The position numbers were made by a program, and so were the translations under genes. From contig OX337242.1 in assembly GCA_946965045.2 (NCBI GenBank), forward strand, positions 1,240,001 through 1,304,000: 64,000 nucleotides of DNA, in the 5' to 3' direction. The notes beneath the pieces were generated by a model that was not told the DNA's origin, made no database searches, and saw nothing but the letters and a program-made list of their open reading frames with translations. The DNA comes from Epithemia pelagica (Eukaryota > Protista > Bacillariophyta). The stretch's first letter is position 1. Each line of letters starts with the position of its first letter. Of the stretch, positions 13,759-58,774 are shown one piece after another.

Positions 13759-13761
13759 CTA

Positions 13762-28711: not shown

Positions 28712-28772
28712 ATGCCAACGAGGTTTGATACTCTTTTGGATGCTGTAGACACTGTCTCACAGGCAGCCGCAC

Positions 28773-28813
<41 letters not shown>

Positions 28814-31402
28814 ACAGCAGCAGCAGCAGCAACAGCAGCAACAGCAGCAACAGCAGCAACAGCAGCAACAGCAGCAACAGCAGCAACAGCAGCAACAGCA
28901 GACGAAGCGCCCGAAGAGGAGATGACAACAACGAAGGAAGCGACACCAACAGCGGGTCATCATCGGTTTCTTTCGGACGCAGATCTTGCTATGGTGACCG
29001 AAAATAGGATTGCGGAGAGTCGTCGAGGCAATCTGAAGGATGATAGTGACAAAGCCTACAGCGTCACGCACCGTGCGGTGAGTCAGCGCCTCGTTGACCG
29101 ACGTAAAGAGGCCTACAGGACCGCCGTCGCAGCAGTGAAGCGCATTAAGAGCTCTACGCGAGATCCGCATACCAATTTCATCCAAGGACTCACACATCTG
29201 GCCTCTACAATCCACGAAAGTGATGTGCTTCTCAACGCATACGTAACATTTTCGGTGAAAGCTGCTCCCATTCGGAAATCAGGGACAGGTATCAAGAAGG
29301 AGGTCGATGAGTACGGTGTCGAACTCGGAACAAATGCACCGAGATCTGTGGGAATTGGGATTCCGTTGAAGCAACACCGAGGGAAAAAAATGAACGTTTT
29401 CCCGAATGTCAGTTTCACGCTCGACCATGACCCGGAGTTCAACATTATGCTGGGAAAAACACCTCTCTTTGTTGTGAAGAAGTCGAAGGTCAAAGTCAAA
29501 GACGGAAAAGACGGTGGATTTGGTATTTTTGCAGCGCAGGAATACAAAGAAGGAGAGGTGATAGGTGTCTATGCAGGACAGGATGTAACAACAAAACTTG
29601 TCCCGCGGAGCGAGTACTCGCTTCAATTTGGAGCCGACGATGAACCACGCACCGTTCAACCTGACAACGAGAACTATTTTTTCATGGGATTCCATCTGAG
29701 CAACGATCCCTACTACGACCTCTACGACAAGGGTGAAGTCCCCAACGAAGCAGATGAAATGTACAACATTAAAGTGGAAAAAAATCTTCTCGTCCGCGCA
29801 ATCAGGGACATCGACGAGGGCAAAGAGTGTTTCTTGTTCTACAACATCACCCAGGAGAATGCAATGCAAGCTTCATCATACATCCCTCGCGAGGGCGCAG
29901 GAAAGAAGCGTGGTAGATCCACTGGCGGGGAAGAGAGCAAAGATTTGCCGGGAAAGAAGAAGAACAAGAAGAAGCCAAATACACGTCGTTCTGGTGAGGC
30001 GGATTCTCCAGTGCAGCTCTCTGAACATGGTCCGGTGGATGATGCTCCTGTTGTTTTTCCGATTCCTCAGGTCACTACTCCTGCCATTGCTGCCACTGCG
30101 ACTGCCCCTGTTCCTCTTGGTTCCCCTCCTCCAGCCCGTGGTCTTGTCCCTGCTCACGACCATCAAACCTACGGCCAATCTCCTCCGTACCAACATCCAC
30201 AGCAGCCTCCACCGTACTATCATCCTCCACGCCAACCTCCTCTGTACCAATCTCCTCCCCACTATCAGCAGTCCGCATTCGCGTCGGTGCACTACCCAGG
30301 GCAAAGTCAGCCTCATTACTCGCCGGCCTACGGGCAGCCACCTTATGGAGAATATGGGCAGGTACCACCACAGCCCATTCATCCTTCCCATCACCCGGTA
30401 ATCCATCATCTCTCCAGTCCGGGAGGATCGGCAGCTCCGTCACTCGAGCGCATTGAAGATTCCGTCGTCAAACAAGCAACTACAGAGCAGCAAGTGAAGG
30501 AACTGCACCGGAAGCATGCCCATTTGTTGGTCGATCTCGAGGGTGACCGCCGAGGACGTTTTGTGGTGGTTGCGAAGGAGCTGCTTGATATGTTGCGTCT
30601 ACCGTGGTGTCTCGGAACGGACAGGCACGGAAAGGACAAGATCACGAAGAGGATGCAAGGGGTTCAAAACTTCTCGAAGCAAATTCAAATGCGCATGCAG
30701 GAAAATGAAGGTTTTGTGATGAGCCATGACTTTAGCGCCTACTCTAAGGACGAGCTAGCTGCAATGACGAAGAATTTCAAGACAGTTCTCGCTCAAGCCC
30801 TTGTGGAGATGGGCTACGCAGCAGACGTCTCGTTTGCGGACGGAATCCAGATTCACCTGTCCTATATCAAGACCGAAGAGCCAAAAGTCCAAGAGCCGCA
30901 CCTGGACTTCATGTGGGAAGTTGTCACGCCGAGTTCCAATGACCTTTTGCCCGGTGAGAGCCCGAGATCGAAAGGAGTGACAACTCGGGGAGTGGGAAAG
31001 AAAAAGGCACCGTTCAAAGAACGTGTCCCGTTTGTTGTCTTCATGCCCCTGACGGAAGCCGGCATGGCCGTGGAAATATGGCAGCATCGTAACAACCACA
31101 CTGCCAAACTCCATCAGCTGGGTGAGGTGGTTGAGATCCCTTATGGAACGATGCTGCTTACGCGAGGCGATACCGTTCACGCGGGAGGCTTCGTGAATGG
31201 TACCCAAGGTGATCCACGTGCCCATTTCTACGTGTACCAAGGACGCAATGAGACTGTCCATACATACCCACCCAGAAACAACTATGAATTACCGACCGAA
31301 TATAAGATGAATGATCGTCTCGCAAAATTCTACAAGCACGGTCACAACATCCCTTACTCCTCACCAACGAAAGTGCTCGGTGGACTCGATTTGAACAATT
31401 GA
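28712..31402 (+). CDS. Cargo: SET domain + C-terminal 2OG-Fe(II) dioxygenase-like fusion protein (896 aa)
   Basis: SET motifs GFGIFAAQEYKEGEVIGVYAG, GFHLSNDP and RAIRDIDEGKECFLFY. Dioxygenase HxD...H...R motifs QEPHLD, GDTVHAGG and DPRAHFY. Confidence 0.8.
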
Positions 31403-32552: not shown

Positions 32553-35013
32553 GATCGATTCAATCTCAACAACCATGGCACCTACGCCAGATCTAAAGCT
32601 TGGGTAAGCTACTGTAGGAGCTAAACTAAGTGTCCATTGGGTAGGACGTGCAGAGAGCATATATTGAATGAGCCGCGTTGCGTCGTCGTTTGGTCAAAAT
32701 CTCATGTGGTCTGTGCCACGACGAGAAGTTGCCCATCGACGATCGCATCGCGCTCGACAACCATGGCACCTACGCCAGATCTAAAGCTTGGGTAAGCTAC
32801 TGTAGGAGCTAAACTAAGTGTCCATTGGGCAGGACGTGCAGAGAGCTTATATTGAACGAGCCGCGTCGCGTCGTCTTTTGGTCGAAATCTCATGTGGTCT
32901 ATGCCACGATGAGAAATTGTCCAACAACGATCGTATCGCGCTCGACCACCATGACCCCTACACCAGATCTGAGACTTCGGTAAGCTACTGTAGGAGCTAA
33001 ACCAAGTGTCCACAAAGTAGGATGAGCCGAGAGCTCATATTGAACAAGCCGCGTTGCGTCGTCTTTTGGTCAAAATCTCATGTGGTCTGTGCCACGACGA
33101 GAAATTGTCAAACAACGATCGCATTGCGCTCGACCACCATGACCCCTACGCCGGATCTGAGACTTCGGTAAGCTACTTTAGGGTCTACCCTAAATGGCCA
33201 TGAAGTACGACAAGCCGAGAGCTCATTTTGAACGAGCAGCGTTGCGTCGTCTTTTGGTCCAAAAACCTTGTGGTGCGTGGCACGACGAGAAATTGTCCAA
33301 CAACGATCGCTTCAAGGTTAACAACCATGGCCCCTACGCCGGCTCTGAAACTTGTAGAACCTAATGTAGTCTCAATAGTAACGGGCAAAAAAGTAGGACG
33401 TCCGGAGGGACCATGGTTGAATATTGGCATGGCATCGTCCATTGGTCCAAAATCCTTGTGCTCCGTGGCACGACGAATAATCGTCCATGGATGATCGCCT
33501 CGATCATGAGGACCATGGCCCCTAAGCCGGATCTGAGACTTGGGTAACCTAACTTAGTCTCTATAGTAACGGGCAAAAAAGTAGGACGTCCAGAGGAACC
33601 ATTGTCGAATATTGGCATGGCATCGTCCATTGGTCCAAAATCCTTGTGCTCCGTGGCACGACGAATGATTGTCCATGGATGATCGCCTCGATCATGAGGA
33701 CCATGGCCCCTACGCCGGATCTGAGACTTGTATAACCTAACTTAGTCTCTATAGTAACGGGCAAAAAAGTAGGACGTCTGGAGCGGCCATATCCATGGAG
33801 CCGGGTCTCGTCATCCTTTGGTCGAAAACTCGTGTTGTGTGTGATGCATCGAAAAGAAGCGTCCATCGATGGATGGCCTTTTCTCAATGGCCATATCACC
33901 GATGATCGATCTGATACCTCAGATCGCTAAAGTAGAGCCTAACATAAAAGACTACTAAGTAGGACGTCTGGAGCGGCCATATCCATGGAGCCGGGTCTCG
34001 TCATCCTTTGGTCGAAAACTCGTGTTGTGTGTGATGCATCGAAAAGAAGCGTCCATCGATGGATGGCCTTTTCTCAATGGCCATATCACCGATGATCAAT
34101 CTGATACCTCAGATCGCTAAAGTAGAGCCTAACATAAAAGACTACTAAGTAGGACGTCTGGAGCGGCCATATCCATGGAGCCGGGTCTCGTCATCCTTTG
34201 GTCAAAAACTCGTGTTGTGTGTGATGCGTCGAAAAGAAGCGTCCACCGATGGATGGCCTTTTCTCAATGGCCATACCACCGATGATCGATCTGATACCTC
34301 AGATCGCTAAAGTAGAGCCTAACATAAAAGACTACTAAGTGGGACGTCTGGAGCGGCCATATCCATGGAGCCGGGTCTCGTCATCCTTTGGTCGAAAACT
34401 CGTGTTGTGTGTGATGCATCGAAAAGAAGCGTCCATCGATGGATGGCCTTTTCTCAATGGCCATATCACCGATGATCGATCTGATACCTCAGATCGCTAA
34501 AGTAGAGCCTAACATAAAAGACTACTAAGTAGGACGTCTGGAGCGGCCGTATTCATGGAGCTGACTTCGACGAATGAGTAGGCTAATCTCATGTGGTCCG
34601 TGCCACGTCGAAAAATCGACGCAATGGTGTGGAAGCTCGTTTGCATCCTATGCCTGGGGATAGCCTATATGGGTCAATAGTGTTCTCATTTACACTAAGG
34701 TCGATAACATATTTTAATTTCATGGCAATTGGTCGAGTATTGGTGGAGAAATCGCATGGTGAATGTACCGGCCAATGGGCAATCTAGCGGCCAAATCGCA
34801 AAAAAAAAAAATGACCCTACAATGATGAGAGAGAACTCGATGACGATGGCAGATATGGAAAAAGTGCCCGGTGGGGACCTAAAGCATTGTATGAAGATGA
34901 TTTCTATCATCCCATTTCTATGGAGGTGCTATATTGAGCTAGTAATTGTTAAAGACCACCATGGTCATTTGGCCGCTAAAATGCAGGGTCTGGCCGTATC
35001 ACCCGTGAAGGCA
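32553..35013 (-). repeat. Right TIR: ~6.5 x 188-bp type C/B units + 4 x 190-bp type A units (33778-34547) + ~465 bp unique
   Basis: CTGGAGCGGC at 33778/33968/34158/34348/34538; CCATG(G/A)C..CTA unit every 188 bp from 32574 to 33702; reverse complement of the left TIR. Confidence 0.93.
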
Positions 35014-37775: not shown

Positions 37776-38337
37776 ATAGATTCGAAATCCTGAACCCATA
37801 TTTTGTATTCAATCGTTTGTTTCGGCATCAAGTGGCAGCGGGCTTCGTCGATTGAAGCTGTTGAACTCAGTGAAGTTTCAGGTGTGAGATACATTTTCCC
37901 TGCTAGCTAGTGGTCGTTATTCTAATAGCTAGTGGTCCCCGTCAAGCATGTGGTCGCTTGTGTGGGGCGTTATGGGGGCGGAATAGGAGGGGGGCATTAC
38001 GAGCGAGCCATCCTAACGGAGCGTGATATCTAATATTATCACGATTTTGCGTACGTGGCCTTACGTAGCACTCCAAAACCCTTGATATCATGATACACTA
38101 CGAGCCCCTGGTATCCCAAAATTGGAAGAAAAACTTGTCAAAATCGCCAGCCATCGCAATCAAACCGCCAGGCGTACTGAAATTACATGGCACGCGTGCA
38201 ATAGTAGAAAAACTCTTCCAATCTCACTTACATAAGCCATTTTCCGAAAGAACCGTCTCGATTCTTCTTCCGTTTCTTGAACGGTACTAGCCAGATCGGT
38301 TCCCTCTCACCCACAAATCAATCACGGTAGTCCTAAA

Positions 38338-40173
38338 ATGCCAATGGACGAAAGCAATGAACAAGAATCAATCTCAGAAGACGACAGGAAAGGAGAGGAG
38401 AAGAACAGCAACAATCCAACACACAAAGTAGCCGTCATGACGTCTCCCCCGATATACATCCCGGAGCTCGATGACACGCTTCGTGAAGGAACGTTCGTGC
38501 ATCTCCGACTTCCAAGCCAGAACAAGAACAAAACAACCATTGGTCGTCTACAACAATCGAACAATTGAAACATTGTCATTTCAATTTGGTGGCCGCTTTT
38601 CCCCAAGAACAGCAAATGTCACCCATCCATTCCCAAACACCAACATTCACCCATTATCCAAGGATTCGGCTCGGAGAATGAAGAGATTTTCCAAACCAAC
38701 ATCGTTATATCCGACCGCGACGCGATGTACAGCGGCACCAAGATTCTTTTTCCGGCTTTCGTATTCTCCCTAACGGAGTTGGCGAATCCACAAAACTCCT
38801 GGGGACAAGGCCTCAACAACGTTTACATCGCGCGTTACAGGCAATCCGAAATCCGTGGACGAGAACAACTCATTGAAATACTGGACGACAAACTACTCTG
38901 TTTCCCGATGCAGAAAAAGAAGAAGAAGAATCCTAGTGGTCTTATCGTTCCACCTCGATGCTACCACCAGAACGTTTGGTGTGGTCTATTCCAACTCCGA
39001 AAGGGGATTATGAAGATCCTGAATAAGCGGAGTGGGCAGTCCGAAGACCAGGAAGTTGACAGTGTCTCTATAGGCAATATCCCACTAGAGACCTTCAACT
39101 ACCTACATGTTGTGGGGAATTCAGGTACAGAAAGGCTTTCGTGCCGTATGTTTTCCTCCAGTGAAACTTACCTTGATCTTGGTTCTAACCTTACTCGCCG
39201 TAAGATCAGAATGTCTTTTCAGAGCGGCATCCTTCGTTTCGAGACGATGCAGGATTTAGATATTCTCCGTCACCTGTTGGGTATTGCCTCTGTTTACGGA
39301 TCGTCGGAACACCGTCCGACATTGGCAGATGGGAAGCATGGCCGTCCGTTGAAGCGTGGACATTTCCTGACCGTAGTGAAAGGGAAGGAAAAGGACGATG
39401 TAGAAGATCATACTTTCAAGCGCAGAAGCATGAGCCAACGTGTTGACCTTTGCTTTTCTCCCTACCAAGTAAAGGTGACCGTTGGCTTCGAACGCTACCG
39501 ATACGACCACGATCACAAGGGCCGTCTCAAGTCCACCCCGCCTACAAGGCACCTGCAAGCCGTGTTGGCCTGCAGTGCATATGTACCAGAAGCCGAATCG
39601 GACAGTTGCAGTGTGTCTGACGAATCGTCGGAATCCAACGAATCCGAACATCATAGAAAGGAAAAAGCCGAAGACGACAAGTCTGTGTCTACCTTTGACC
39701 GCATTCTGAACGGGTCGCTGGACTCGTCTGAAGACAGCACCCCAAGCAATAGCAGCAAGAAGAAAAAGACCGAGGACAATTCGGACGACAAACTGTCTCT
39801 CCATTCTCATTCGGACAACGTATGGTTTCGTTTTGGGGATGTGGATATTTACCAAGGAGACCAATTCCATCTCGATGGGACAGTGTATGAGATTGTAGGT
39901 CTCTTCCTTCCATCGGACCAAGTAAGGTTTGTTATCCGAGAGCAATTCTCGACCGAGTTGTATACTTCATCCAAACCCGCAACTTCGGAGAAAGAGTTGT
40001 CCGACAAGAGTCTTGCCCGTGTGGGGACGATTGCTCCTTCGGAACAACCCACCTATGGATGTATTGTATGTGGAGGGCATCGGTTGAACAAGAAGAAACC
40101 CCTGACGGAACAAGAAATCGCCTTATTCCAACATACTGACACCCTTCTTTCCGCCATCAAAGAATACAATTGA
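38338..40173 (+). CDS. Convergent partner gene, 611 codons with one in-frame TGA (38566-68); BAH-like N-terminus
   Basis: ORFs 38338-38568 and 38725-40173 share one frame with a single stop between them. LREGTFVHL..IGRL..ISIWWP..EEIFQTN..FPAFVF resembles BAH motif spacing. Confidence 0.6.
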
Positions 40174-40207
40174 AGATATCGACATAATCCTACCTTAAAC
40201 TATATAT

Positions 40208-40699
40208 TTACACTAACCAATCACCAACAGAATCATCTGTAGAGTCTGATAGGTCATCGGCGTCAGAGGTTTTCCCATCCAAGGCCTGTGGTCCGATATG
40301 CCAGTCGAAAATTCCAAATCCTTCTGAATAGGACACATGACTGTCGACGTCGTCATTGTTCTTACCATCATTATCGTCGCTATCTTCCATAGCAGCAACA
40401 TCCATACTGTCGTCTTGAGAGTTTGTCAACGCACTTGCCAGTCTTTCCAATTGTTCATCTAGGGTTTCAATCTCCTCCTCCACAGTCTCAGTTGCTCTAT
40501 TGGTATCATTGCAATACGAGCTTTTGATGTCGCTCAGGAGGAACCTTTTCAGACCAACTGTCATATCCAGTCCTGCCGGCGCACCAGTTTCTCGGCTGGC
40601 GACCTTAAACAAATAGAAACTACGACATACCCAACCCCGGTTCACACTTAACGAAAAACTATCTTTTTCCTTAATCCATGTCCTGTTTCTATCCGGCAC
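40208..40699 (-). CDS. Small acidic ORF inside the RAG1-like element
   Basis: 163-aa ORF with a coiled-coil-like segment and an Asp-rich tail; may be an exon or a separate gene. Confidence 0.4.
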   Translation of the reverse strand: MPDRNRTWIKEKDSFSLSVNRGWVCRSFYLFKVASRETGAPAGLDMTVGLKRFLLSDIKSSYCNDTNRATETVEEEIETLDEQLERLASALTNSQDDSMDVAAMEDSDDNDGKNNDDVDSHVSYSEGFGIFDWHIGPQALDGKTSDADDLSDSTDDSVGDWLV

Positions 40700-41116
40700 T
40701 CACAAACTTTTGGTCGCAGAACGGGGGGGTCGTTTTCTATTACAAATACGAAAGCAATAGAAGACTACAAACTCTCAGGAAACGACGTATTCGACTTCTA
40801 TGTTTTATGAAGATATGTTGGGAACTTGGTCCTGAGAGATTTGGTCTTTTATTCCTGGAGATATGAGCGTTCAAAGTTTGACAGTCGGTTTTCAGGTCTT
40901 ATATTTAACATGTAGGTTGTGTACAGTTTGGATCATAGTTGATGAAATAGTTTCGGGACGGGTCTGAGGATAGCGCGCGGGCCCGTTTGGTAACAAAAGC
41001 TCGTATTGGGTGTTGTTGCTTCGTTCGTTATTGTTAGTTCGATCGTTGTTCTCGTCGTCGTCACTGGTCGTCGTGCTCGAATCTGACGACGAATCGGGTA
41101 AGGGATTCTTGATGAA

Positions 41117-43846
41117 TTATCCAAACTCGATTTTCCCTTTGTTGTTCCTAACCCAGTTTCGATGTTTCTCCTTGTCCTCCTCTGTCAAGGACGCCAACTC
41201 TTCCTTGATACTCTCCATGGTATGCCCCATAGTGAATATGAGACGCCGTTGCAACCACTTTGCCATCGGCATGAGACGACTCTGTTGACCACGTCCTTGA
41301 TTCACCGAGCCCCCACGCTGTGTTCTTGAATAGAAAAATGACTTGAAGAGGCTATTGAATGCCTCCCATCCCTGTTGCGAGTGAGCATACAGGCTCTTCC
41401 AGTGCAGAAGGTATTCGCCAATGTGGGCACTGCCTATCAGGTGCGCATAGTTCGTTATCCCTTCCTCGCCGTAAAGGATAACCCACTCTTTGAAAAAGGC
41501 ATCGGCAAGTCGTTGATATTCGTAGATTGTTTCGTCGCTTAGTTCCTCCTTCCGAAGAAGGATCTCCATCGAGGCCTTGTAGTTGGCCATACACACTAAC
41601 CACCTCGTCCTGTCCACCTCCTTGACAATACATAGCTCTATAATCTTCTCGATCTGAGCAACGATTTTCCGAATCTTCGTATTCTCGAATTTGATCTCTC
41701 CCATGGCGCTCTTGGTTTTGTCAAACGGAAGATTCTCCTGGAAAGGCATGGACGGCGAACCGAGAATCTCTTGATTCAATGCGTCCTCGATGCGGGAAAC
41801 AAAGGCAGAACATTTCTTTTCCATGTTACCGTGAAGGGCCTTGTCTATCCAAGCAAGTTTATTGTACTTGCAGTTGGTAAGGCCCGTCTTCAGACACATC
41901 TGGAGGATCTTAATACCCATCCTCATCTCCATATGCAGGAGACAAGGAATGGTATCCATAAGCATCACCAGTGCTGTGGTGACAGAGGCTTCTCCGTACC
42001 GTTTGACGGTTGTACTAGCGTCAACATACGCCCACTCGGCAATCAGCTGCAGTTTCAATCGCCGTTGGCGTGAAACCAGTGATCCACCGAGATCAAGTCC
42101 GCGTAGCTGTAAATCGTGATTCAAGTTCTTACTGTATTCTCTTTGTTGTGCTTGATCGGCCCTGTCGACTCCAAAATGGATTGAGGATAGGTCCTTTTCT
42201 ATCTGGTTCCTTGTAGGTGGTGCTCTGGGATCGATTGCAGCGGATATAGCAATCTTGCAATCGCTCCATATCGTGGATATGTCCTCAGCAATCTTAGGCA
42301 TCGCGTCCTCGAACGTTTTCACTTGATCGTTCATTTTCTTCACGTGTTTCGGAGTACACATTGGGGCGTGGTAGCATATAGTGCCCTTGTCATGTGCCAA
42401 ATAGTCTTGATGTAGGCACCATTTGCATTGACTAGGCTTGCCTGCTTCTGTATGAAGGGCACCGCTCTTTACAGTACATTTCGCACATGGGTACGTCGCG
42501 TTCTTGGCGGCCCCACCTTTCCCCGACAGTTTCCACTCCACGGACATATCGCAATTTGTTATGACTTTCAGAGCCATAATCGTGTACATGGTGGGGAGCA
42601 CTTTGTTCGCTGCCTCCTGGATTTCCCTTATCATTCGAGAGAATAGTCCACGAACAAGGGCCTTGTTTTCTCTGCCAATGACGCAGACCAACGGAAAGAC
42701 CATGTCTCGTGATTGGGCCTTCAATGGACTGTTTTTGTCATTAAACTTGAGGCCACCGAGAACGTGGCTTAAGTGTTTGGATAACGTAGCCCCATCCAGA
42801 CTTTGTGCGAACTGAATCGCTCTTCTCTTGGCTTCCCCATCCAACATGTTGGCAGCTTTCAAGATAGCAACAAATACGTCCGCGGCACGGAAGTAAAACC
42901 CTTCCGAACCATCCTTTGGGTTCTTGATTGGGTGGAAGGGTACGACACAGTCCGCGAATTGCTCAATGTAGGCAGCGCAACGTTGAATTGCCGAAGTCGA
43001 CGGAATCATCGTATGCTTCTTTGTCGGTCTGCCTCCACATTCGACTGTCTGTAGAACCTCAACCCCTGCATAATTCAATTTCCCTCCGGCCATGTCCATC
43101 TCTTTTAGAATGTTGAAAGGCGTAAAGATGGTTTTCCTTAGGTGTCGTTGGACCACTCGTACCAAGCAATCACTGAGTTGGTTGTGATGGATGGGGTCTT
43201 CCACAAGCATCCGAGATATTTGTCCAAAGAACTTTTTCGCCCGGTGACTGTTGCCCTTGTGGTTCCTCACGGATTCTACTATTACTGATTTAATGTGAGA
43301 CACAAGCTTCGTCATATTGTCATCCGAGGAACAGGTGGAGGGGATCTTGCCATGCTTCGCTTCTAAGGACTTGATCCGTTTCTGGAGTTTGTTGATCTCG
43401 CTTAGGTTACTTGCCATTTTCTTTTGTTGCTTCTTGAACTTCTCTCGCATGCTTCTATTCTTCTTGGAAAGGGACTCTATCTCCTTTCGTAGATCTCGAA
43501 TAGTTTCCTCACTCTGGAGTAGGGCATTCACAGTTTGGGTATGGACTTCGTTCGTGGTTGAAGTTCCTTGCCATTCTTGGCATACAGTCGCAGTCTGAGA
43601 GTCATTAGTAGCAGTCCGAGATTCATTAGTACTAGTGTTGTTCACTCGAACTTCTGGACGGTCTGGAGTGACTTCTTGAGTAGTTGACGTTCTCGTTCCT
43701 CGTACGAAGAAAGGATGGAGTTGCCTTGGATCCGCCGTCGGTGTCGGGTTTGTAGGTTTGGTGACGGAGGGGGGCCGTCCCTGTCGAGGTTTTCTTTCTC
43801 CTGGATTTGCTCTTCCTCCGTCTTTTCGTTGTCTATGTAAACACAT
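41117..43846 (-). CDS. RAG1/Transib-like DDE transposase (909 aa)
   Basis: Ordered RAG1-core motifs: QSLDG (D600-like), FPLVCVIGRE (KPLCLMLADE), TNCDM..G..YPCAKC (D708-like plus CxxC), PCLLHM (ALHC), ITNYAHLIGSAH (ITNYFHKTLAH) and SQQGWEAFNSLFKSF (E962-like). Confidence 0.85.
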   Translation of the reverse strand: MCLHRQRKDGGRANPGERKPRQGRPPSVTKPTNPTPTADPRQLHPFFVRGTRTSTTQEVTPDRPEVRVNNTSTNESRTATNDSQTATVCQEWQGTSTTNEVHTQTVNALLQSEETIRDLRKEIESLSKKNRSMREKFKKQQKKMASNLSEINKLQKRIKSLEAKHGKIPSTCSSDDNMTKLVSHIKSVIVESVRNHKGNSHRAKKFFGQISRMLVEDPIHHNQLSDCLVRVVQRHLRKTIFTPFNILKEMDMAGGKLNYAGVEVLQTVECGGRPTKKHTMIPSTSAIQRCAAYIEQFADCVVPFHPIKNPKDGSEGFYFRAADVFVAILKAANMLDGEAKRRAIQFAQSLDGATLSKHLSHVLGGLKFNDKNSPLKAQSRDMVFPLVCVIGRENKALVRGLFSRMIREIQEAANKVLPTMYTIMALKVITNCDMSVEWKLSGKGGAAKNATYPCAKCTVKSGALHTEAGKPSQCKWCLHQDYLAHDKGTICYHAPMCTPKHVKKMNDQVKTFEDAMPKIAEDISTIWSDCKIAISAAIDPRAPPTRNQIEKDLSSIHFGVDRADQAQQREYSKNLNHDLQLRGLDLGGSLVSRQRRLKLQLIAEWAYVDASTTVKRYGEASVTTALVMLMDTIPCLLHMEMRMGIKILQMCLKTGLTNCKYNKLAWIDKALHGNMEKKCSAFVSRIEDALNQEILGSPSMPFQENLPFDKTKSAMGEIKFENTKIRKIVAQIEKIIELCIVKEVDRTRWLVCMANYKASMEILLRKEELSDETIYEYQRLADAFFKEWVILYGEEGITNYAHLIGSAHIGEYLLHWKSLYAHSQQGWEAFNSLFKSFFYSRTQRGGSVNQGRGQQSRLMPMAKWLQRRLIFTMGHTMESIKEELASLTEEDKEKHRNWVRNNKGKIEFG

Positions 43847-44200
43847 TGAATGAACTCGTCTTCCGGATCTCGGCTTCCCATTGTGATCAGTCAGGGCAGG
43901 GCTATGGTTTGGTTCTTGGGTATCAGCTTTCTCTCTTGACTAAGTGACAACTGGTTTCGTAAGGGGAGAGGGAAGGGTCATCTCTTCGTATGGGTTGGTC
44001 CAATTTGTGAGATAGAACAGGCCCAATCATCGGTTTAGAATCGACGATTCATTGACGAATAAAAGGCGACTGGGTACTTATGCTCTATACGGATTTTAAT
44101 ATATTTTATGTTCTGGTGCGCGCCAGTCGTATTTCTTTTCTCATAAAATTGGTGTTCGGGGCATCTACTTTCCGTTGGCTTTGGAGGGTTATTGCCGGGG

Positions 44201-44280
44201 TCGGACCCCCCATGTAACGATTATCCAAGCTTCTCTATATAATCAAAGAAGCTTGGATAATACTTACATGGGTGGTCGGA
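44201..44280. other. ~33-bp-stem inverted repeat with TATATAA in the loop, upstream of the RAG1-like ORF
   Basis: CCCATGTAACGATTATCCAAGCTTC-tctatataatcaaa-GAAGCTTGGATAATACTTACATGGG. Confidence 0.8.
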
Positions 44281-44947
44281 TGGTGTTGATCCGTTGGATT
44301 TGGCTGTCAAAGTCAGAATGGGAGTTTTCGTGATTCTCAACGCTAAGTCACGTCTTATACTTAACTAAAAACGCTTCTGTTGATTAACTCTATAGTGAAT
44401 TTTTAGGGTTCCGATTTTGCGAGCATGGTATTTTGGCCATGCTTGCGTTCGGGTTGGGATATGAGGGGCTCGTAGTGATCATTTTGATGGGAGAAAACAA
44501 AATGATATCATTCTTATCATCCCCAGCTACGTCATCTATCTATCGTGTAGTCGTAGAATCAATACACCAAAGTAGAGCTCTAGGTCACTGTGAAGTAGCT
44601 GGAATGGCATTCGTAGACACATGATAAAATCTCTATAATTAGTGTGTGCGTGTGTTGACATGAAAGCATCCCAGTCTGTTTATCCATTTTTGACTGTTGT
44701 GTTGAATTGGAATTGAGCAATCAACATTTGATGGATGCGGCTATTAGTCTCACATAGTCCCCTACCAACTTGATACTCATCAATGTGTGTCCGCTATATC
44801 TCTGAGTCACATTTCTCAGTGACATGGTAACCCCAGATGGTTGAACTCTAAGCCTCACAGCAATGGATGGCAGGATTGATTCAAATTCACAGTGCTTGTA
44901 TCTAACTCCCTACCAAAATCACCCCAGTTCATGTGCATGGGCCAAAT

Positions 44948-45731
44948 TGTTAGAATTCTCACCGTCTATGGTGGTTAGATTCTACATCTCATCGATTCCC
45001 CATGTCACATAGCCTCGTGCTATCGCATCATGCCATCTAGCTTCGAGCTATGTTCCCTAGCTTTGCGCTATATTGACCTATATTTCTTCGCAAATCATGA
45101 AAAGTGAGAATAGATTGACGAACTCACTCTCAAGACTAAACTGGGTCGTGCGGTATTACAACGGACGTAAATTTGGCCGTTGCTCGGACATTATACTAAC
45201 GCCCTAAGCGTACGCGCCCGAAATCATCGAGCGCGCCCAAGCGACATCCGAGCGCTGTCGGCATCTATCCGACCCAACGGTCTAAGTTTCCCAAGCACGA
45301 CACACGATCACGCGAGACCATATTTCCATTCCCACAATCTCCAAATTGTCAACAAGCTGCGCGCCATGAAAACAACTATGCCAATCCAAAGCAAGAGCTG
45401 TTGACCCTGTATATGTTATCTGTCCACATATACATGTCATATACATCACGTGAATCGACTCCAACTATTCCAAACCTGTTGCCGCCAAGAACCTATGACA
45501 CATGACCCTTGGCAGGACCGAACATTTCACGTAGACCTATCGTAGTAATCAACACACAATCTAACAATATCACCATTTATCACATCCTCTTTTGTGTCCC
45601 GACTATCCTTTTGATAGACTTCGACTTGCTTGCTTCTCTGACCCTGAGAAGCTTGTATCGGTTGGTGACTACCTGATTGTCTGCTCTATCGAGCATCCTA
45701 ATGCCTCTACGATTCAGAAAGAATTGTATCA
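44948..45731 (+). mobile_element. Solo LTR (784 bp) of the same Copia family, CAAAT target-site duplication
   Basis: TG...CA ends; CAAAT at 44943-47 and 45732-36; near-identical to 15139-15920 except the last ~35 bp. Confidence 0.93.
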
Positions 45732-48569
45732 CAAATGGAAGAAACATTTGCAAATCCTTCCCCAGCTCACTGCCTTGCTTCTCCTCTTGACCGGTGGCTT
45801 GTCAGTGGTTTGTTTAGGATATAACAATGGTTTTCTTATCTTGACAGCAGTTGGACTATCCTCTAGATTTATGTGGTTCACAATCAATGGCATGAATATC
45901 GTTTCACCAGTCCTCTCGTTGTCTCGACTCCTACTGTTTGCTATGATGTCAGATCAACTGCTTGCCCAGTTGTAACTGCAGATACTGGTCTAACTTGAAT
46001 GGTTCTTCCCTCTTTCCCAGTTTTGATCACCCAACCTAAACTCAACCCTTGACACATTCAACGAATCCATTCAACACCTTTCAAAGTCTGAGAGAGAGTA
46101 TCTATCTTGCCGCCCTTTCTTGTTGGGCACCTGGCTTGTCGGCAGTATTGCTCCAACCTCCTCATAATTCTAACTCCATACATGCCTGACAACTACAACT
46201 GCAACTGCAACTCATTGATTAAGTACTGTCCTATTAATCTTCTAGGGTACTTGACAAAAGTCTTTTAGGTCGCTTGGTCACCCGGTGAGCTTCCCCGCCG
46301 GGTCCAAGGCGACCATGGTGAAGCTCTTGATATGTAGGTCTTGGTATGTAGGTTCTTGGTATGTGGGTTCTATTGGTACAGACATGGGGGAATGGGGGAC
46401 ATGTATCAGTGTTTACAAGACAATTGCCGTGGAGTCATTCTCCCGACAAGCCGGGCACCCAACATGAAAGGATGGCCAGACACAGGGAATTATTATTACT
46501 ACCCTCTGCGCCAGGCAACCCTCCTCAAGCAAGAGGACTTGACACGCAATTATTATTACTCCTACTACGTTGACAGTGAGATGGCGATCTACCACACCAG
46601 TTAGGTTTGTCATCATTCATCATGGTTTCAGATTGGTTGGTTGTTTAGGAGTAGGTGGTGGTGGTGGTGCTGATGGTCATTTTTAGGAGTAGGTGGTGGT
46701 GGTGGTGCTGCTGATGGTCATTCTCTTCCTGTTTGCGATGCAGGGATTTGATGTTGGTGTTGTCATCATCATTGGGAGAATTCTATACCCATGCACCATT
46801 TCCCCCCTTTGCAATGAGTTTTGATGATCAATGGTATTGGTGGGATGGAGACTGCAAAATGGTGATGCCATGCCAACGTACAAGCATGTTAAGGATATAG
46901 CACCCAGAACAGTTTTTAATCACAGTTTGTTGGAAAACTGTCTGCGCCTTTGTTGAGAGGAACCATGTACATTGATTCAGTCACATCACCTCGAGGCCGA
47001 CTACGTAGCTGCCTATTCGGGCGAGAGGAAACATTGCTTCAACTAATGCACGTTCGAGCAAGTCCAGGTGGTCGATCAGGACTGAGTGTGTAATCCCATG
47101 TGAACAAATCCTTGTGCAGGAACGTTGTTTGAGGGCAAACTCCAGGTAATGCAGAAACAAATTCCATGTGAAGGTGTAAAGAACATGCCAGCATGGTTAA
47201 GTAGGATGTGGTGAACGGACTTGTGAACCATGTCCAGATGTTGATTGTCATCAATTCAGACCACAGAAAGGAAGGCAGCACCATCACAAGATATTGACCG
47301 AGGCGCAGTAACCTTTCTTTACTGCGAGACGCAACTAAAGGTATAATTCATTCATACTTGTGGGGAAGAGGTACCAAATCTTGCCAACAGATCACTTCCA
47401 GATGGGGCATGGTGAGCCATGGTGACAAAGTTGAAGCACACAACATCAACATAAGCCTTCTGAGTGTGAAGGATGTCAAAACTCCCTGTGTTGCTTCATT
47501 GTCAATGAAGCTAGGTTGCACTGACATCATTCTTTCATCTGCAGCCTCAGAATGACTTGATGTCAGCAGGGTTCATAGGGGAGGTACCAGACTGTGTTGT
47601 AGGGCTAGCCATATTCTGGGCCAACTGGCGAAGAGACATGACCAGCTGCCATCAGGTTGTCACACATCTTGTTTGGCTGATCGATAAGTCTTCAGTATTG
47701 GTATACAAATGCCGTTGGGGTGCCCAGCAAAGTTCACAGAAGTAAAATCGTTGGCGGTAATGGTAAAATGTAGTCCCGCCGCGGCAAGTGCTTCCACCAA
47801 CCTCGTCACAAGCACTCATCGAAGTGTGTTGTCATACATATCAAGCAAGTGAATGACAGGTGGAGCAAAATGCATCGGTTAGTCCAATCTAGGCGGTGAA
47901 AGTGGGGGCCACAGCATATAGAGGCATTAGTTGCGTGTTGGAGAGCCAAGTCGCGATTAATGATGAATGACCTGACATTTTACAAATCTCGTGAATCGGA
48001 AATCAGAGATAATGATTCTGTCATGTAACCAACTCATTTCACAAGTTTGGAAATCAACCCACCGGAGAGGGAGTCCAAATTTAATCATTTTTCACCTTTT
48101 TGAGTCGGATGGTCTTCCAATGCCAGTATTTGGAGTATGAGAGTGACGGGGCAATACAATGGATTTGATATTTCAATCTATCAGCAGCAGCGACAGCATG
48201 TATGTTACTGATCCACGTATTAATGCGCAGTACAGAGTTCATGCTGACGTTGATTTGTCTTCCCACGGACATGCGAGAAGATGAAACTCCTTCGGTTGCA
48301 AACTGGTGGCTCTGAAGATGGAATTCATGTCATTGTCCTGCTTTGTCGTAATATGATTTGTCTACAGTATCAAACTATACTCTGACAAGTGTGAAGCAAC
48401 CCCAAACACCATAATGTTTCACTTGAAAATTTTGATGGTGCTGGTATGACTTTGTGGTCTGGGTTCATGCTCTCAACGTTGTCCCGAGTAAAGCTCAACG
48501 CCATTGATGCATCGTAAGTCGTTGTATCTCAAAGAAGACAGTTTAATCCAAGGTTTGTCTTCAGGGCCA

Positions 48570-51500
48570 TCAACTGCTCGTTTTCGTCCGCATCCTCAAT
48601 ATTCGGAACTGTTTTCCTCCATTTTCTCTCAGCGTTTTAATGACTTTGTCATACTCAATACCTTCGATTGGTTTATTGTCAATGGCCACAATTTCATCCC
48701 CACGTCTTCGAAATGGCTGTGGTTTCATGCACATCACAGCAGATTTTTTGCCATCACTCAAGTGTCTATAACCATTGAAACATGGTACACCATTGATCTC
48801 AGTTATACTGAGACAAAGTCCTTCAGGGGTGACCGGTACCCTGGCAATGTAGAATGTGTATGCCGGGACCTTCATTTTCGATCCATCCGGTGAAAAGGCT
48901 TTAGGTATAGAGATAGGAGGCAGTCGAGATTCATTCGCTTCAGAATCTTTTGAGGACGTGAAGACTTCATTAGGTTTTCCCGGCAGTGCAGCCTTCGATG
49001 AATGATGGTGAGGGAGATCTACCTCGCTTGTCCTGGGATTCCGCGAAGACTCCCTTTCCTGTACGATGTGATTCTGAACAGGTGGACCATATCCCCAAAC
49101 AGGTTGAACATATGGTGACGAATTCATCATGCTTCCATGAACTGACCATGTTCCATTATGCTGCTGGAAGCTAGGGAAAGGTGGTGGATGAACATAGGAG
49201 GGAGTCGTGGTCTGGTGTTGACTCAAAGGCCGCAGTCCAGCTGGTGCAGCATACCTTGTCGGCCAATGAGGCGGTGCCAAATGTGTTGTCTGTTGAATAT
49301 GTGGCCCAGCAAACTTTGTCTGTGGATTGTGATCTATTTCATAGGTAACTACCAACGTAAGAAAACAAATTGTGGATGTATCAAATTGTACAAAACAACA
49401 TACCTTGCATTGTGTTTCTAATCGCTCCGACCGCGTGCAAGAGTGACTTATCCCCATTCCCTTCAGGGCCCCTTGAACCGATGCCAATCCCAGCAGCATT
49501 TGGAAACATGGCTTGGACGCCTGAACCATTGGTGGGTTGAAAAGAAGCATTGGTGCCTCGATGCACATATTTCGTTGCTTCGACGACGTTCAGCGGTGCA
49601 ACAGCAGTTCCAGAAACACACGCATAATCAATAGTTGATGTTGGCAACGCTTTGTTTTCCATTGGATGTGTGGCAGGTGTTTCTTGAAGGGTGCGGTTTT
49701 TCAATCCTATCGCCTCCTGTGGTTGAAGAGATCCATTGGACGTGTCAACCAAGCTTGCCTTGCCGAGAATTCTTGGTGGAAAAGCAGTTGCGTCGTGAGA
49801 GGTTCCTTTTAAAGTCGTTAACCGTGAAGTTGAAGTTGGGTTTCTTGAAGCAGCGGTGGGAGGGTTTTGACGCACAGCCTGTGCTCGGCTGGTGAGAGGT
49901 ACCGCGGCGTTTCGATGCGATTGATTGCCAAAGGTCACGACTGACCCTTCGTCAACACCACCTGGGAAACATGTAATTTGGGGAATTTTTGCATGTATGG
50001 CATTGACTTGTTCTCTTGTTCCTTGCAATGTCGTTGAACTTTGTCCATTCCCAGCTCCTCCAGCAGGATCATGGTGTACCATGTCAAAGACAATTGACGG
50101 CTTTTCTTTTGCTGCCCGAACAATTGGTTCCACTTCATTCCATGGGAGCCCATGAACCGATGTACCATTGATTGCTCGAATCCAATCCCCTTCCGCCCGG
50201 AAAAGTTTGTTCTTTTCAGCATACCCCATTTCCCCATCGTTTGATCGCTTATACCCAAGAAAGACGGTTGTGTTCAACGTGTTATCGTAACCAATCTGAA
50301 CCAACATCGGCAATGCAGGGTCAGCGTCTATCTTAACAACATAATTCTCTTCCCCGAGGTGTTTGTGGTCATTTTCTCTGACCGATTGTCTTGAGTCATC
50401 GCTTTTTTGCCTTGGGTCTGTATTCCAGTTCTGTTTTGCCTTGTCGTTCCGCGATTCACTGGTCTTCATAATGGGACTGTGACCACTCTTTCTGCCAGAG
50501 GAGACTATATTCAAGTTCCTTTTCACCGTGTCGTTCGGTGATTGACTTGACTTTGACATGCTCTTGTTGCCATTCCTTCTGTCTAATAGCCGGGGCGATT
50601 CTCTATCCACATTCCTTTTCATTGCGTCATTCTGTGTTTCGTTGGACTTAGAAAAATTTGAAGAGACAGATCCGGTAGACTTCACTCTCGAAGCAGATCT
50701 GTTGACCCTCGCCGGAGATCGAACAATGCAATTGCGACAAAACCATGAACCCTCTGGAACCTCCGTCAAGGGTGGATCCAGGCATTCGAGGTGGTAAGCT
50801 TTATGACAGAGGTCGCAAACAATCAGCGTACCGCCATCCTCACATATTTCGCAGTAATCATTCGATGGAAAATCTTTGCGCGATGCTTTCACCTTACCGT
50901 AATCTCTTCGATTCGAGCTCTTCCATCTGTAGTATTGGACCATCACTGTGTCCATACTGTAGCCTGTCATTTTCGCAACCGCAGGAAAATCCTTCCGGAC
51001 GTTGGTTTTGAAGATTTTCTCCAACCTAGATCTATCCTCATCGGTTAAATCTGTATATGGATCAACTGTGGACTTCCTCCGAGCCGCCTGGACCACTTGT
51101 ACAAACCGCCTCTGCGCTTTTGCCGTATCATAGTTGACCTCATGGAGGGCCTGCATCACCAATGATTTGACAGGAAACGGTAAATGCGAATTGTTTGTCA
51201 TGAATTTGTCAATATCTTGACCTGATAATCTTGCCTTCTTTGCCATTTCCGGATCCCACAACACATCCCCACCAACATGGTTCTCAAGGTTTTCCTCACT
51301 CCCACAAGGTGGAATGGATGATACTTGATACGTTGGACCGATTCGGCTGCTCTTAGCTTGCTCCGAAGCCTTGGAAGAGATTCGGCTGCTCTTAGCTTGT
51401 TCCGAAGCTTCGGAAGAGACTTCACAATCTTCGCTGTTGTCGTCGGACTTGCCTCGACGGGCTCTTGTTCGCGATGATCGTCTCACGTCCGAAATCTCTA

Positions 51501-51786
51501 TCCCACGAGGATCAGTAGACAACACCGCCAAACCGTCAGAGCGTGCAATCTCAACTTCCAGGATCACAGGTGAAGCAGACGACAATGTCGGGTGCTCTAT
51601 TTTGGCTCTTTTTCGAGTTGGCCACTGAGTTCCCGCATTCTTTGGTATGAGGCCGAAGCTCACACTTTCATGAGAGGGCTTCATGTCATTATTGCTATCT
51701 CCCACGCGAGGTCTTGCAGAAATGCCTAATACCAAGCCTGAATCTGTTTTCGTGGTATTGTAGCATTCGTTGGGCGTTGTCATCAT
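48570..51786 (-). CDS. ELM2-SANT-PHD-PDZ-PDZ-like chromatin protein, full-length copy B, spliced
   Basis: 801-aa ORF with ELM2, SANT, PHD (CEIC...CDLC...YHLECL...WFCRNC) and PDZ-like GDWIRAINGTSV; in-frame intron ~49334-49403 joins it to the second PDZ-like ORF. Confidence 0.82.
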
Positions 51787-53616
51787 GTTGTGTGTTTTGT
51801 GGTTGGCTTTCTCGCGGCCCCCAAAGCCCCACCTCGGGTTCTGCTCGAGGTGAAGTTCACCTCGAGCGATGGACTCAATGTCTGATGGAGATTATGATTG
51901 GTTTAGATTCCAACTGAGACAAAGTACAATTAACGAAAATAGTCTACAACATGTCTGATTCCCCTCGCATAACACACTACCCACACAATCTGATTCTTGA
52001 GGAATTCTATTGAAATGATTAGTCTCCAAATGATTGGAGACTTGAGGTAACCCTTGTTTCTTTACAAGCAATGCTGTTCCTATAATTGACTACCACAAGC
52101 TCCGACCTCCTTAGCCCTGACATTGTTCACACGACTTGCTTCAATGATTTTCTCAGAATGAACCCAAAAACACCACTGCCCAAGCAGGTGTATTTCTACT
52201 TCTATACCTCATCTTCCTTGGCAGGATGTAGGTTGATAAACCTCGAAAAATGCGTCATTAGTAAATTTTCTGGGGACTGTTCACTTGTTCGTCATTTTTA
52301 GCTTTGAGCCCGTCAGGCTCCTCACTACACAGGGAGAACTTAGACAACACATAGGCCTTCTAGCCAGGTTGAGCTTGTCAGTACTTTGGACTTCTCGCTG
52401 GGCAAACAGCTTCTCCTTGTGAACCCTGTAAGGTCTGCCTCGACAAACTTACTAACGTGGTCCACTTCTTGTCGCTATTGCCCTTCTCGTCATCCAAAGT
52501 AATCCTTGTCGCACCCCTCCATGTCAACACTTCTATTAGTAAAAGTCTTCTTAGTAGATCTCCTGAAGTAAAATTTCCTGTGATGTTTTTTTGCATCACT
52601 TTTATTTGGTGGGGGGCTTGCTGGTCTCCTACAGAGGAAGCTAACAACCGTTACTGTGCATAGGCCTTCTCGTAAGGGCATGCCGATTGGTTCTTACGGA
52701 CTCTTGTCAGGAAATATGAATAGCTTCTCATCGTGGACTGCATAAGGTCCACCCTGGCAGACTTTCTTGAGTGGTCCACGTCTCATTGTTGTTGCTGTTC
52801 TTGTTGCATGAGTCCTCTTTGTGGCTCCCGTCCTGGATGATATGGGCTCTCCTGTGCCAAACACTAGCATTGTGTCTTTACCATTGTCAATTCTGTTGCA
52901 TTGTAGTCGGAACAGTGTCTTTACCATTGTCAATTCTGTTGCACTGTACGCGACATTCAAGTTCCCATGAGAAGGTGCATTCTTATGTTGATGGAGAAAA
53001 TGCTGATTCAGCATTTCAATGTGCAGCATAGTTGTGATATAAATGTTGTTTTGATAGTGGCATCATATGTACTGAAGGAGTCAAGTGTTGACAATTTGGC
53101 ACCGGTGGATCTCCATGCTGGCTTTCTAGCATTTGTACAGAATAGTTACCATTGAGCAAGTACCACACCACTAGTGCAAAATAAGGGAGTGGTTGACATT
53201 TCACTTCAGATCTGTCCACACACATCAGATAACAGGAGGAGAGCACGGGAGCACAATGGGAGCAAAGTTGTGTTGATTGGGAGCTAGGGGGGAGCAGAAG
53301 GGGAGCAAGATTGCAATGTTTCTTCTGATGGAATTACAGTTTTTGTATTTGGAGGGAATTTGCCTGAGCAAAATAGTTGCTTCACAGTAAGCCAAAGAGA
53401 GAAAAATTTTTTGTTGAGTGGGGCGAGATTCCATCACGCCGGGCGGTTCTCAAGATCCTGTGGAGTGCGCGACTTTTCGCGTGTCCAGCGACTCGAGTTT
53501 TCGTGCGAACCTTTCGTCTCCCACTCCCACCAACACTACATGTTCTATTTTTTCTATTGCCACAATTTTTTTTCAAAGAGGCAAAACAAAGTTGATAGGA
53601 GTATCTTCTTTGTGCC

Positions 53617-57314: not shown

Positions 57315-57812
57315 TTGCATGCTTCTCGCGTCCTTCCAATGACGAAAGTTTCACAGTCGAAACAATACCGAGGGCTTTTCCGGAACTCCATCGTCGAAAA
57401 GGCGTTGGTCGGAATACTGATAATCCCATGGTTGTTCTTTTTATGGGTGAGCCACAACCATCCGAGCAGTAGCACCATAAATCGTCGAACCAGCAGCAAC
57501 AGCATTCGACGGGTCCAAGATATTCACTCAATTGTCGATGGGAGCAACGTGCAAGTGAAACAAGTGTCCAATCCAGTACTGGCCGAAGAAGCCTTTGTGC
57601 AAAGTTTTGCGGATCCCGAACACGAAGATGGCTTTGCCGAAAGTGATTTTGAACTATCCGAAAGTGGAGACGAACTGGACGAGGAACTCAATGAAGAAGA
57701 CGATGATGATCTATATGCAGATACAGAGATTCTAGAGGAGGAGGAAGAAGAAGAAGAAGACCATTCCGGTGACAATACCGATGGAGAAGAGGTTGTGAAA
57801 AGCATACAATGA
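57315..57812 (+). CDS. Small type-II-membrane-like acidic protein, copy B
   Basis: Near-identical to 8372-8869. Confidence 0.5.
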   Translation: MHASRVLPMTKVSQSKQYRGLFRNSIVEKALVGILIIPWLFFLWVSHNHPSSSTINRRTSSNSIRRVQDIHSIVDGSNVQVKQVSNPVLAEEAFVQSFADPEHEDGFAESDFELSESGDELDEELNEEDDDDLYADTEILEEEEEEEEDHSGDNTDGEEVVKSIQ

Positions 57813-58774
57813 AAGCTGCCACTGTTGGCTTGATAGGAACGGAGGAATAAAGAACAGCCTTCTGTTGTGTCATATCTAGCATTGCATCGTATACATGAAA
57901 CGAAAAATAGTAGTCTTCTGATTTGGTGTCAGACCATTCCATTCAACGACAAAAGATCGCAACCGTCATCCATTATGATAATTTGGTAGGGGAACAACAT
58001 ACAGGAGAGCGTGTTCTACCTTTGTGCCTCTGTGTTGTTCCGTGACTCGGCATTGTTGTCACTTCGTAATTCGATCAAGAACTACGCGCATTCAGTAACA
58101 GGGAACATGCACAAGGTCGCACAAACACACACGTTCACACATATTGGAATGCGTACTACCTAATTTAAACTGGACAAGTCAAAACATTGTATCAACCTGC
58201 GTAGGACAAATCGACACAATGCATCACCTTGTTGGTTTAGTTTTGTTGCCTAAGAGGAGTAACAAGTAACAGATATTCCTCGAAACATCCCATAGTCATA
58301 GAGTCTATCGCAAATTTTCGACAGACCAAAGCAGATGGTCCCTCCTTTCGCGGGTTCGCTTTGTCTTGTGGCACATATATCCGGAGCGTCTGTGCAGCAT
58401 TATTTCAAAAAAGGAATTAAAACATAAAATTATATGTAGCGCTGGGGAGTGCCGAATCTTGAGCTTCCGGAAAAAGATACCAGGGAAGAAACGCCCATGT
58501 TGTTGAGAGTTTCTGTGACGGGTAGGCCAAAGAAGAAGAACGAGCACAATCTGTTTCCTCATTCGTGTGTTGTCGTCACTTTGGAGAAGGATCGATCAAG
58601 AGAAGAAGGGTATCTTCTGTTTCATCCACAACTGGATGCTTCTCGTCCAGATTTCAATTCCATTCTGTGAATAGAAGAAGAAGAAGAAACGAGTGCAATC
58701 ACTTACTAAATCATTCTCGGGAAAACAGGCGAGACACAACATCAATAAAGAAGAAGAACACAAAACAGACAATC

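Follow-up and report, generated by a model that had tools for sequence, protein, structure and literature searches.

A 64,000-nucleotide stretch of the genome of the diatom Epithemia pelagica (GenBank assembly GCA_946965045.2, contig OX337242.1, positions 1,240,001 to 1,304,000; hereafter the window) contains a degraded copy of a multi-copy cut-and-paste DNA transposon with two genes, at window positions 38096-44477. We consider it probable that this element comes from a large, undescribed eukaryotic lineage, present in diatom-type genomes and aquatic metagenomes, that lies within the CMCT (CACTA-Mirage-Chapaev-Transib) supergroup of transposons but belongs neither to Transib/RAG proper nor to any CACTA family that can be recognised. 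The core of its transposase is predicted from modelling to adopt the RAG1/Transib architecture, and a second, convergent gene accompanies the transposase in every assembly copy.

The element measures 6,382 bp and is bounded by 24-nt terminal inverted repeats (TIRs) that are complementary at 22 of 24 positions; no comparable pair arose in 100 shuffles. An initial annotation of the window had described such repeats around a 909-aa open reading frame (ORF) lying tail-to-tail with a second large gene, and both observations held, the second gene having its longest intact frame at 38725-40173 on the plus strand and the layout being conserved family-wide. Three ORFs lie inside the element, of 909 aa (minus strand) and 482 aa (plus strand), with a small minus-strand ORF between them. 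Past 24 nt, the sequences of the two ends differ from each other. An intact paralogue with 78% identity, locus L002, shows the same plan, with TIRs at 9408 and 15724, a 1,204-aa transposase (P0002) and a convergent ORF2 of 578 aa. When L002 was compared with the window, homology stopped exactly at the CAC...GTG termini. The lesions of the window copy were defined by comparison with L002 and its transposase. The features of the window element are as follows:

38095, no strand: flanking base A, one copy of a putative 1-bp target-site duplication (TSD); the same base stands at 44478
38096-38119, plus strand: TIR at the ORF2-side end, beginning CACTACGAGC; homology to L002 ends exactly at its first base
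38437-40173, plus strand: full reading frame of ORF2, about 578 codons, with a putative BAH-like N-terminal domain; the longest intact ORF is 38725-40173 (482 aa)
38566-38568, plus strand: in-frame stop inside the BAH-like domain of ORF2
40208-40699, minus strand: ORF163, what is left of the transposase's acidic C-terminal tail; 40271-40462, read in the frame of the transposase, corresponds to P0002 residues 1117-1180
41117-41119, minus strand: nonsense codon that ends the 909-aa ORF; Gln in P0002
41117-43846, minus strand: transposase core ORF, 909 aa, with a coiled coil at about residues 100-180 and the catalytic core at about 215-909
41363-42796, minus strand: catalytic span from D351 (42794-42796) to E828 (41363-41365), via E393, D433, C454/C457, C474/C477, C491/H493 and H802/H808
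43687-43881, minus strand: frameshifted N-terminal leader of the ancestral transposase; P0002 residues 1-65 align at 72%, in frame -3 against frame -2 of the main ORF
44201-44280, no strand: conserved subterminal palindrome upstream of the transposase gene, with 34-nt arms, 88% complementary
44454-44477, minus strand: TIR at the transposase-side end
44478, no strand: flanking base A, the other copy of the putative 1-bp TSD

Both ends could be defined in 11 elements: the window copy, L002-L006 and L008 in assembly ERZ21939226 of the European Nucleotide Archive (ENA), and L027, L042, L052 and L062 in metagenomes. The plan TIR-transposase-ORF2-TIR was counted in 11 elements, and a convergent transposase/ORF2 pair lies within TIRs in the window, L002-L006, L008, L027, L052 and L062. 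Family elements are 4.8-6.6 kb long and have imperfect TIRs of about 18-24 nt starting CA-N-TACG, and all 11 complete elements carry 5'-CA..TG-3' termini. The termini read CAC in the window, L002, L003 and L042 and CAA or CAT in the other elements; variants within the family are CACTACGAGC, CAATA[C/G]GAGC, CATTACGG and CAATACGG. Subterminal regions are 70-81% identical between subfamilies despite saturated synonymous sites, and the L002 counterpart of the palindrome at 44201-44280 is perfect (30-nt arms, 9609-9679) and aligns between the copies. These regions, the palindrome included, are candidate binding or promoter sites. A terminal 10-mer of the CAATAGGAGC type also has a single internal occurrence, about 370 bp inside the right end of L008 (13632-13641), L009 (13680-13689) and L010 (13638-13647), where it may serve as a subterminal site bound by the transposase.

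The window was 99.6% identical over 14 kb to contig ctg1353l of ERZ21939226 (locus L001) and had the same flanks; the two therefore represent one insertion seen in another haplotype or assembly version. Dozens of transposase paralogues with 40-78% identity were found on other large contigs of that assembly. A 1.84-billion-protein library yielded 1,371 representative clusters at E≤1e-3, and 336 family stretches were confirmed in JGI metagenomes; no relatives were found in the prokaryotic and viral collections searched. Among the matches listed, named homologues came only from the diatom Epithemia clementina, as hypothetical proteins; the matches listed for a 40-member profile likewise stayed inside the family and included no annotated distant relative. 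Intact, recently active copies are present in the same assembly: the copies of the young family L007-L010 are 98-99% identical, share sharp boundaries and lie in flanks that are unrelated. The ratio of nonsynonymous to synonymous rates (dN/dS) was about 0.9 within this young family; between subfamilies, both genes showed a proportion of nonsynonymous differences (pN) of 0.14-0.20 against saturated synonymous sites. This is the pattern of selection that a transposon would be expected to show.

Some members of the young family are themselves altered. In L009 (around 14040-14050) and L010 (around 14005-14019) the right subterminal sequence is kept, the terminal CCTATTG of L008 is absent, and GT is followed by unrelated DNA, so these right ends are aberrant or truncated. 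The left subterminal region of L009 is split by an insertion of about 500 bp (7048-7546). In L002 a unit of about 590 bp (6313-6905) is bounded by perfect inverted repeats of 40 nt, and the insertion begins with sequence similar to these; it looks like a miniature inverted-repeat (MITE-like) element nested in the transposon. In the L007 copy, homology with the sibling copies breaks off where a long poly-C tract begins (around 11812-11840), which is either a truncation of the element or an assembly artefact.

Transposases of the family range from about 900 to 1,280 aa. An AlphaFold2 model of residues 215-909 of the window protein was built with 26 homologues (mean predicted local distance difference test score, pLDDT, 82.9; predicted template-modelling score, pTM, 0.72) and was compared with 350,542 PDB chains using Foldseek. 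The top 49 matches were exclusively RAG1, amphioxus RAG1L (BbRAGL) and HzTransib, with RAG1 ranked first; they spanned about 700 aligned columns at E-values between 2e-9 and 2.5e-3, and the 50th match was NurA, at E 0.12. Target-normalised template-modelling (TM) scores for the fold matches were 0.43-0.61 and structure-based identity was 10-13%; no solved structure of a CMC transposase (EnSpm/CACTA, Mirage or Chapaev) was among the matches to these chains. The model has an RNase-H topology in which strand beta1 carries D351, helix alpha1 begins at E393, D433 comes directly after beta4 and a later helix carries E828.

Conservation across 40 diverse members agreed with the initial assignment of three catalytic acids and CxxC/HxnH zinc ligands. 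D351, D433, E828, C454, C457, C474, C477, C491, H638, H802 and H808 were invariant in all 40, and position 393 was always Glu or Asp, giving a D-(E/D)-D-E tetrad with CxxC and HxnH. The motifs on which that assignment had been based (FYFR..SLDG, PLVCVIGRE, CDM..YPCAKC, LLH, RKIV, EYQ..ADAF, ITNYAHL..H and QQGWEAFNSLFK) are all present in the 909-aa translation. The His pair always had the form H(5)H, and its second His always stood 20 residues ahead of the Glu. The distance from the second Asp to the Glu was 364-429 aa (median 386), and the Ser position of SxxCxxC was not conserved.

Searches at the sequence level detected little of this. Pfam searches with the window ORF, with 26 full-length members (E≤0.1) and with 26 core sequences (E≤10) matched no transposase family, CACTA-type included, and phmmer and hmmsearch against PDB sequences up to E 10 returned no RAG1 or Transib, only coiled-coil noise; the coiled coil was the sole region of the transposase matched by the Pfam and PDB sequence and profile searches. 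With a local profile of the C-terminal block, RAG1 was the sole PDB sequence at E≤10, in register at TNYxH (H802), the second His (H808) and E..N.L (E828). As its E-value of 1.3 is not significant alone, this match was taken as corroboration. A profile of the RNase-H/CxxC block matched only a C4 zinc ribbon which, together with the eight invariant ligands, suggests two zinc sites where RAG1 has one.

The transposase is always accompanied by a conserved partner gene. Each assembly copy has a convergent ORF of 366-588 aa after its transposase, and ten of these ORF2 sequences align at 37-70% identity with many invariant residues. The intact ORF2 of L002 was 68% identical to that of the window and, in a tblastn search of the window, matched in a single frame at 70% identity across 583 columns. 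At the corresponding position, the three metagenome elements whose TIRs are clear carry a convergent ORF of 412-446 aa, and profile-profile comparison of the assembly and metagenome partner ORFs gave a probability of 96.9% (E 1.6e-10, 295 columns). The partner proteins, of about 410-590 aa, are thus homologous across distant elements, which makes the two-gene module an ancestral trait of the family.

ORF2 matched nothing among Pfam families and PDB sequences, including kelch, PHD and the Pfam BAH family. Its structural model (pLDDT 63.6 overall, about 75 for N-terminal residues 20-150) had a mixed alpha/beta topology with no propeller. The top 50 fold matches were BAH domains, with E-values from 6e-4 to 1.2e-2, and included EBS, SHL, BAHCC1, polybromo, Orc1, Sir3, DNMT1 and MET1. 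This weak to moderate fold evidence suggests a BAH-like partner, for which a role in reading chromatin is a reasonable inference by analogy. A RAG2-like kelch partner was ruled out by the topology of the model and by fold matches that were all to BAH domains, in line with the different partner gene that the initial annotation had expected.

Flanking sequences were compared for TSDs. A scan of five complete copies at all boundary shifts found no duplication of 2-10 bp, which rules out a TSD of 5 bp or of any other length in that range, and no 5-bp repeat flanked any of the 11 complete elements. The flanking base was identical on both sides in 9 of the 11 (A/A, G/G, T/T, T/T, C/C, T/T, A/A, A/A and G/G), the exceptions being L027 and L042; at 0.25 per element, the binomial probability is about 1e-4. 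The pattern was seen first in five copies and then held in L005, L006, L052 and L062. These flanks suggest a 1-bp TSD as their most economical reading. The initial annotation had named TSDs of 2-4 bp as evidence against its placement of the element; what was found is single-base identity. No DDE transposon with a 1-bp TSD was found in the literature searched. TSDs of 5, 3 and 2 bp have been reported from bona fide Transib elements in a preprint (10.64898/2026.08.26.747230), and TSD alone should therefore not decide classification.

A dispersed repeat of about 785 bp occurs in the window at 15136-15917, 44945-45728 and 20210-20369, the first two copies being 97% identical. One copy begins 468 bp to the right of the element. 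Because the repeat does not span the insertion point, it gave no empty site.

Published comparisons within the CMCT clade bear directly on how the fold match is to be read. A C(2)C and H(3-4)H arrangement between the second Asp and the Glu is common to EnSpm/CACTA, Mirage, Chapaev, Transib, Plavaka, ESTA, Lanisha and RAG1, the clade has CA..TG termini and TSDs of 2-5 bp, and HHpred matches ESTA transposases to RAG1 (Kojima 2025, PMC12730594). Since the motifs are CMCT-wide, ESTA already matches RAG1 in HHpred and no CMC structure was among the matches, a RAG1/Transib fold match cannot discriminate within CMCT. The family resembles CMCT in its C(2)C and His pair between the second Asp and the Glu, its CA..TG termini and its short TSD, and it resembles ESTA in that similarity to RAG1 is detectable only by structure-aware methods. 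It differs from CMCT in its His spacing, H(5)H and not H(3-4)H, in an apparent TSD of 1 bp, outside the 2-5 bp range, and in a conserved BAH-like partner gene, undescribed for CMCT lineages in the literature searched. That literature held no report of the family, nor of Transib- or CMC-type elements with a BAH-like partner; Repbase was not queried.

The initial annotation had proposed a diatom branch of the RAG/Transib lineage. A RAG1/Transib-type fold was supported; the placement in the lineage was not, given 10-13% identity, no detection by sequence, motifs shared across CMCT and no 5-bp TSD. We regard as unlikely a true diatom branch, sister to or within Transib plus RAG1L, in which RAG2 was swapped for another partner and the TSD was shortened. 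Such a branch would account for fold matches solely to RAG1, RAGL and Transib with RAG1 first, for RAG1 as the only PDB match of the local profile with TNYxH...E..N.L in register, for a convergent two-gene layout as in ProtoRAG and for the CAC termini of the window subfamily, and the variable TSD length reported in bona fide Transib would accommodate the flanks. The identity of 10-13%, however, compares with about 26% between the RAG1L and Transib clans, the means being about 37% within RAG1L and about 34% within Transib (Tao et al. 2022). Detection at the level of hidden Markov models (HMMs) was absent, though divergent true Transibs reach 100% HHpred probability (preprint 10.64898/2026.08.26.747230). 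The distance from the second Asp to the Glu, 364-429 aa, stands against 206-214 aa in Transib and 253 aa in RAG1 (Kapitonov and Jurka 2005, PMC1131882). The Ser of SxxCxxC is variable, the CCGHC tail is absent, there is no 5-bp TSD, the partner is not a kelch protein, and the shared motifs are CMCT-wide.

Likenesses and differences can be set out for each relative. RAGL transposases have a catalytic DEDE tetrad and four zinc-coordinating residues (PMC10629977); the family shares with RAG1/RAGL the predicted transposase fold, the acidic tetrad with CxxC/HxnH, the 20-residue spacing from His to Glu and the TNYxH / E..N.L register, and with RAGL two genes within TIRs, convergent as in amphioxus ProtoRAG, and termini starting CA(C). 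Its partner protein, like the RAG2 PHD finger, plausibly reads chromatin. Apart from low identity and the lack of HMM-level detection, it is unlike RAG1/RAGL in an insertion domain about 130-170 aa longer, in eight rather than four invariant zinc ligands and in that no GRPR motif of a nonamer-binding domain was seen. The acidic tail of P0002 lacks the CCGHC knuckle of invertebrate RAG1L, and the family consensus has no Cys or His there; a coiled coil and an unclassified Cys/His module stand at the N terminus in place of the RING of RAG1. Unlike RAGL, the family has a BAH-like partner rather than a six-bladed kelch propeller, to which a PHD finger is usually joined, and apparently a TSD of 1 bp rather than 5 bp. 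The RAG-like element that the initial annotation mentioned from the pelagophyte Aureococcus does exist: in AanRAGL the RAG1L and RAG2L genes can be recognised and share one orientation, and the TSDs are 5 bp long (PMC9435367).

Transib elements measure 3-4 kb and hold one ORF, for a transposase of about 700 aa in which SxxCxxC is conserved; their TSDs are 5 bp long, and their TIRs consist of a CACAATG-like heptamer, a spacer and an A-rich nonamer (PMC1131882). The family resembles Transib (HzTransib, PDB 6PQN/6PQX) in fold (TM 0.61 on the target, 6pqx_A), in a DDE site with CxxC and in CA-type termini, and differs in its length of 4.8-6.6 kb, its two ORFs, its apparent 1-bp TSD and its longer second-Asp-to-Glu distance.

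Many CACTA elements have short TSDs and several ORFs. It is somewhat less likely still that the family is a very divergent CMC member, of EnSpm/CACTA, Mirage or Chapaev, whose RAG1-like fold is simply the look of all CMC transposases. The CACTA with which window-subfamily termini begin, the short TSD and the several ORFs would fit such a member, as would C(2)C and HxnH motifs common to CMC and Transib and the HHpred match of the EnSpm-like ESTA to RAG1 (PMC12730594); nor was any solved CMC structure among the matches to compete in the fold search. Yet no Pfam transposase family, CACTA-type included, was matched in 26-40 members even at E≤10, the apparent 1-bp TSD falls outside the 2-4 bp published for CMC, and most subfamilies end in CAATA or CATTA, not CACTA. 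Since identity to RAG1 and Transib is low, the second-Asp-to-Glu distance, the Ser position and the C-terminal tail differ from theirs, and no CACTA-type Pfam family is matched, the family lies outside everything recognisable by sequence. Finally, strong purifying selection on both genes between paralogues and fixation of the window copy in two haplotypes or assemblies might suggest domesticated host genes with incidental inverted repeats, but this is highly improbable given dozens of dispersed copies, each with its own TIRs at the expected distance, 98-99% identical copies evolving neutrally in unrelated flanks, and nonsense and frameshift lesions in the window copy.

Several points weigh against an undescribed CMCT lineage as the source of the element, or against parts of that reading. 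Existing catalogues may already list the family as a CMC type, as no comparison with Repbase or RepeatPeps was made. The fold assignment is drawn from a predicted model without residue-level superposition, TM scores are moderate (0.43-0.61), and the sole sequence-level link to RAG1 has an E-value of 1.3. The ORF2 model is mediocre (pLDDT 63.6), its BAH matches are weak and Pfam BAH was not detected. The 1-bp TSD is based on 11 elements, two of them exceptions; L009 and L010, which lack the terminal seven bases at the right end, were left out of the scoring, and such flanks would equally arise if elements inserted bluntly between two bases that were already identical. The hairpin mechanism and the chromatin role of ORF2, considered below, come by analogy only.

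A stronger claim is possible, and we hold it tentatively: the family may have the rank of a superfamily, as a third deep branch alongside Transib/RAG and CMC. Its hallmarks would be a RAG1-fold transposase, a 1-bp TSD and, encoded tail-to-tail, an obligatory partner of the BAH chromatin-reader type. If so, a RAG1-like cutter and a histone-reading subunit were paired more than once, or before the capture of RAG2, and the logic of the RAG1-RAG2 partnership becomes testable in a unicellular alga.

A mechanism can be sketched for the intact element, with RAG1, RAGL and HzTransib as models. A transposase dimer would bind the TIRs through the coiled coil and the N-terminal Cys/His module and nick at the CA end, and the break would be resolved by a hairpin on the flanking DNA, as in RAG1 and HzTransib. 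The two 3'-OH ends would then be joined to target DNA with a 1-bp stagger. The partner may tether or license the transposase on nucleosomes through its BAH-like domain, in which case it would be functionally analogous to the RAG2 PHD finger, yet unrelated to it.

The ancestry of RAG1 has been traced through Transib and RAGL elements found by sequence similarity. The present family escapes such searches, yet is predicted to share the whole RAG1 architecture, and diatom-type genomes and aquatic metagenomes contain it in abundance. The family offers an independent natural case of a RAG1-like transposase with an accessory subunit that may read chromatin; the two genes are convergent in all elements examined. 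A 1-bp footprint, if confirmed, would widen the known range of strand-transfer geometry for the RAG1 fold. The profile can be used to annotate an unclassified class of repeats in diatom genomes, and the intact copies L002 and L008 are available for biochemistry.

The window copy itself has decayed in both genes. About 165 aa, including the Cys/His module, are deleted from its transposase, with P0002 residues 66-231 lacking a counterpart, and the leader (43687-43881) is in a different frame. The nonsense codon at 41117-41119 ends the ORF; the transposase of the near-identical copy L001 reads on to 984 aa. In P0002 the tail of which ORF163 is the remnant is continuous and rich in Asp and Glu. 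The ancestral transposase was thus longer, at about 1,200 aa, and the 909-aa ORF represents its core alone. Although its catalytic core is intact, the window copy is not autonomous because both genes are broken. Intact members (for example P0002, residues 80-131) carry a conserved N-terminal Cys/His module (C..CxxC..C.A.H), followed by the coiled coil, that matches no Pfam family.

Repeats occur elsewhere in the window as well. A large segmental duplication pairs positions 1-14700 with 47865-61250 at offsets of about 47.9-48.9 kb; the two copies are 97-100% identical and both contain PHD-finger and other ORFs, and the element is located in the unique sequence that separates them. Tandem repeats with a period of 188-190 bp occupy 21435-23206 and 32553-34606, with 4-6 copies each and within-block identity from 65% to 99%, and a SET-domain ORF (28712-31402) lies in the region flanked by both blocks. 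A 386-aa ORF at 12384-13544 on the minus strand matched the Tc3-type transposase helix-turn-helix domain (PF01498, E 2e-6, below the curated cut-off), which suggests a Tc1/mariner-like remnant.

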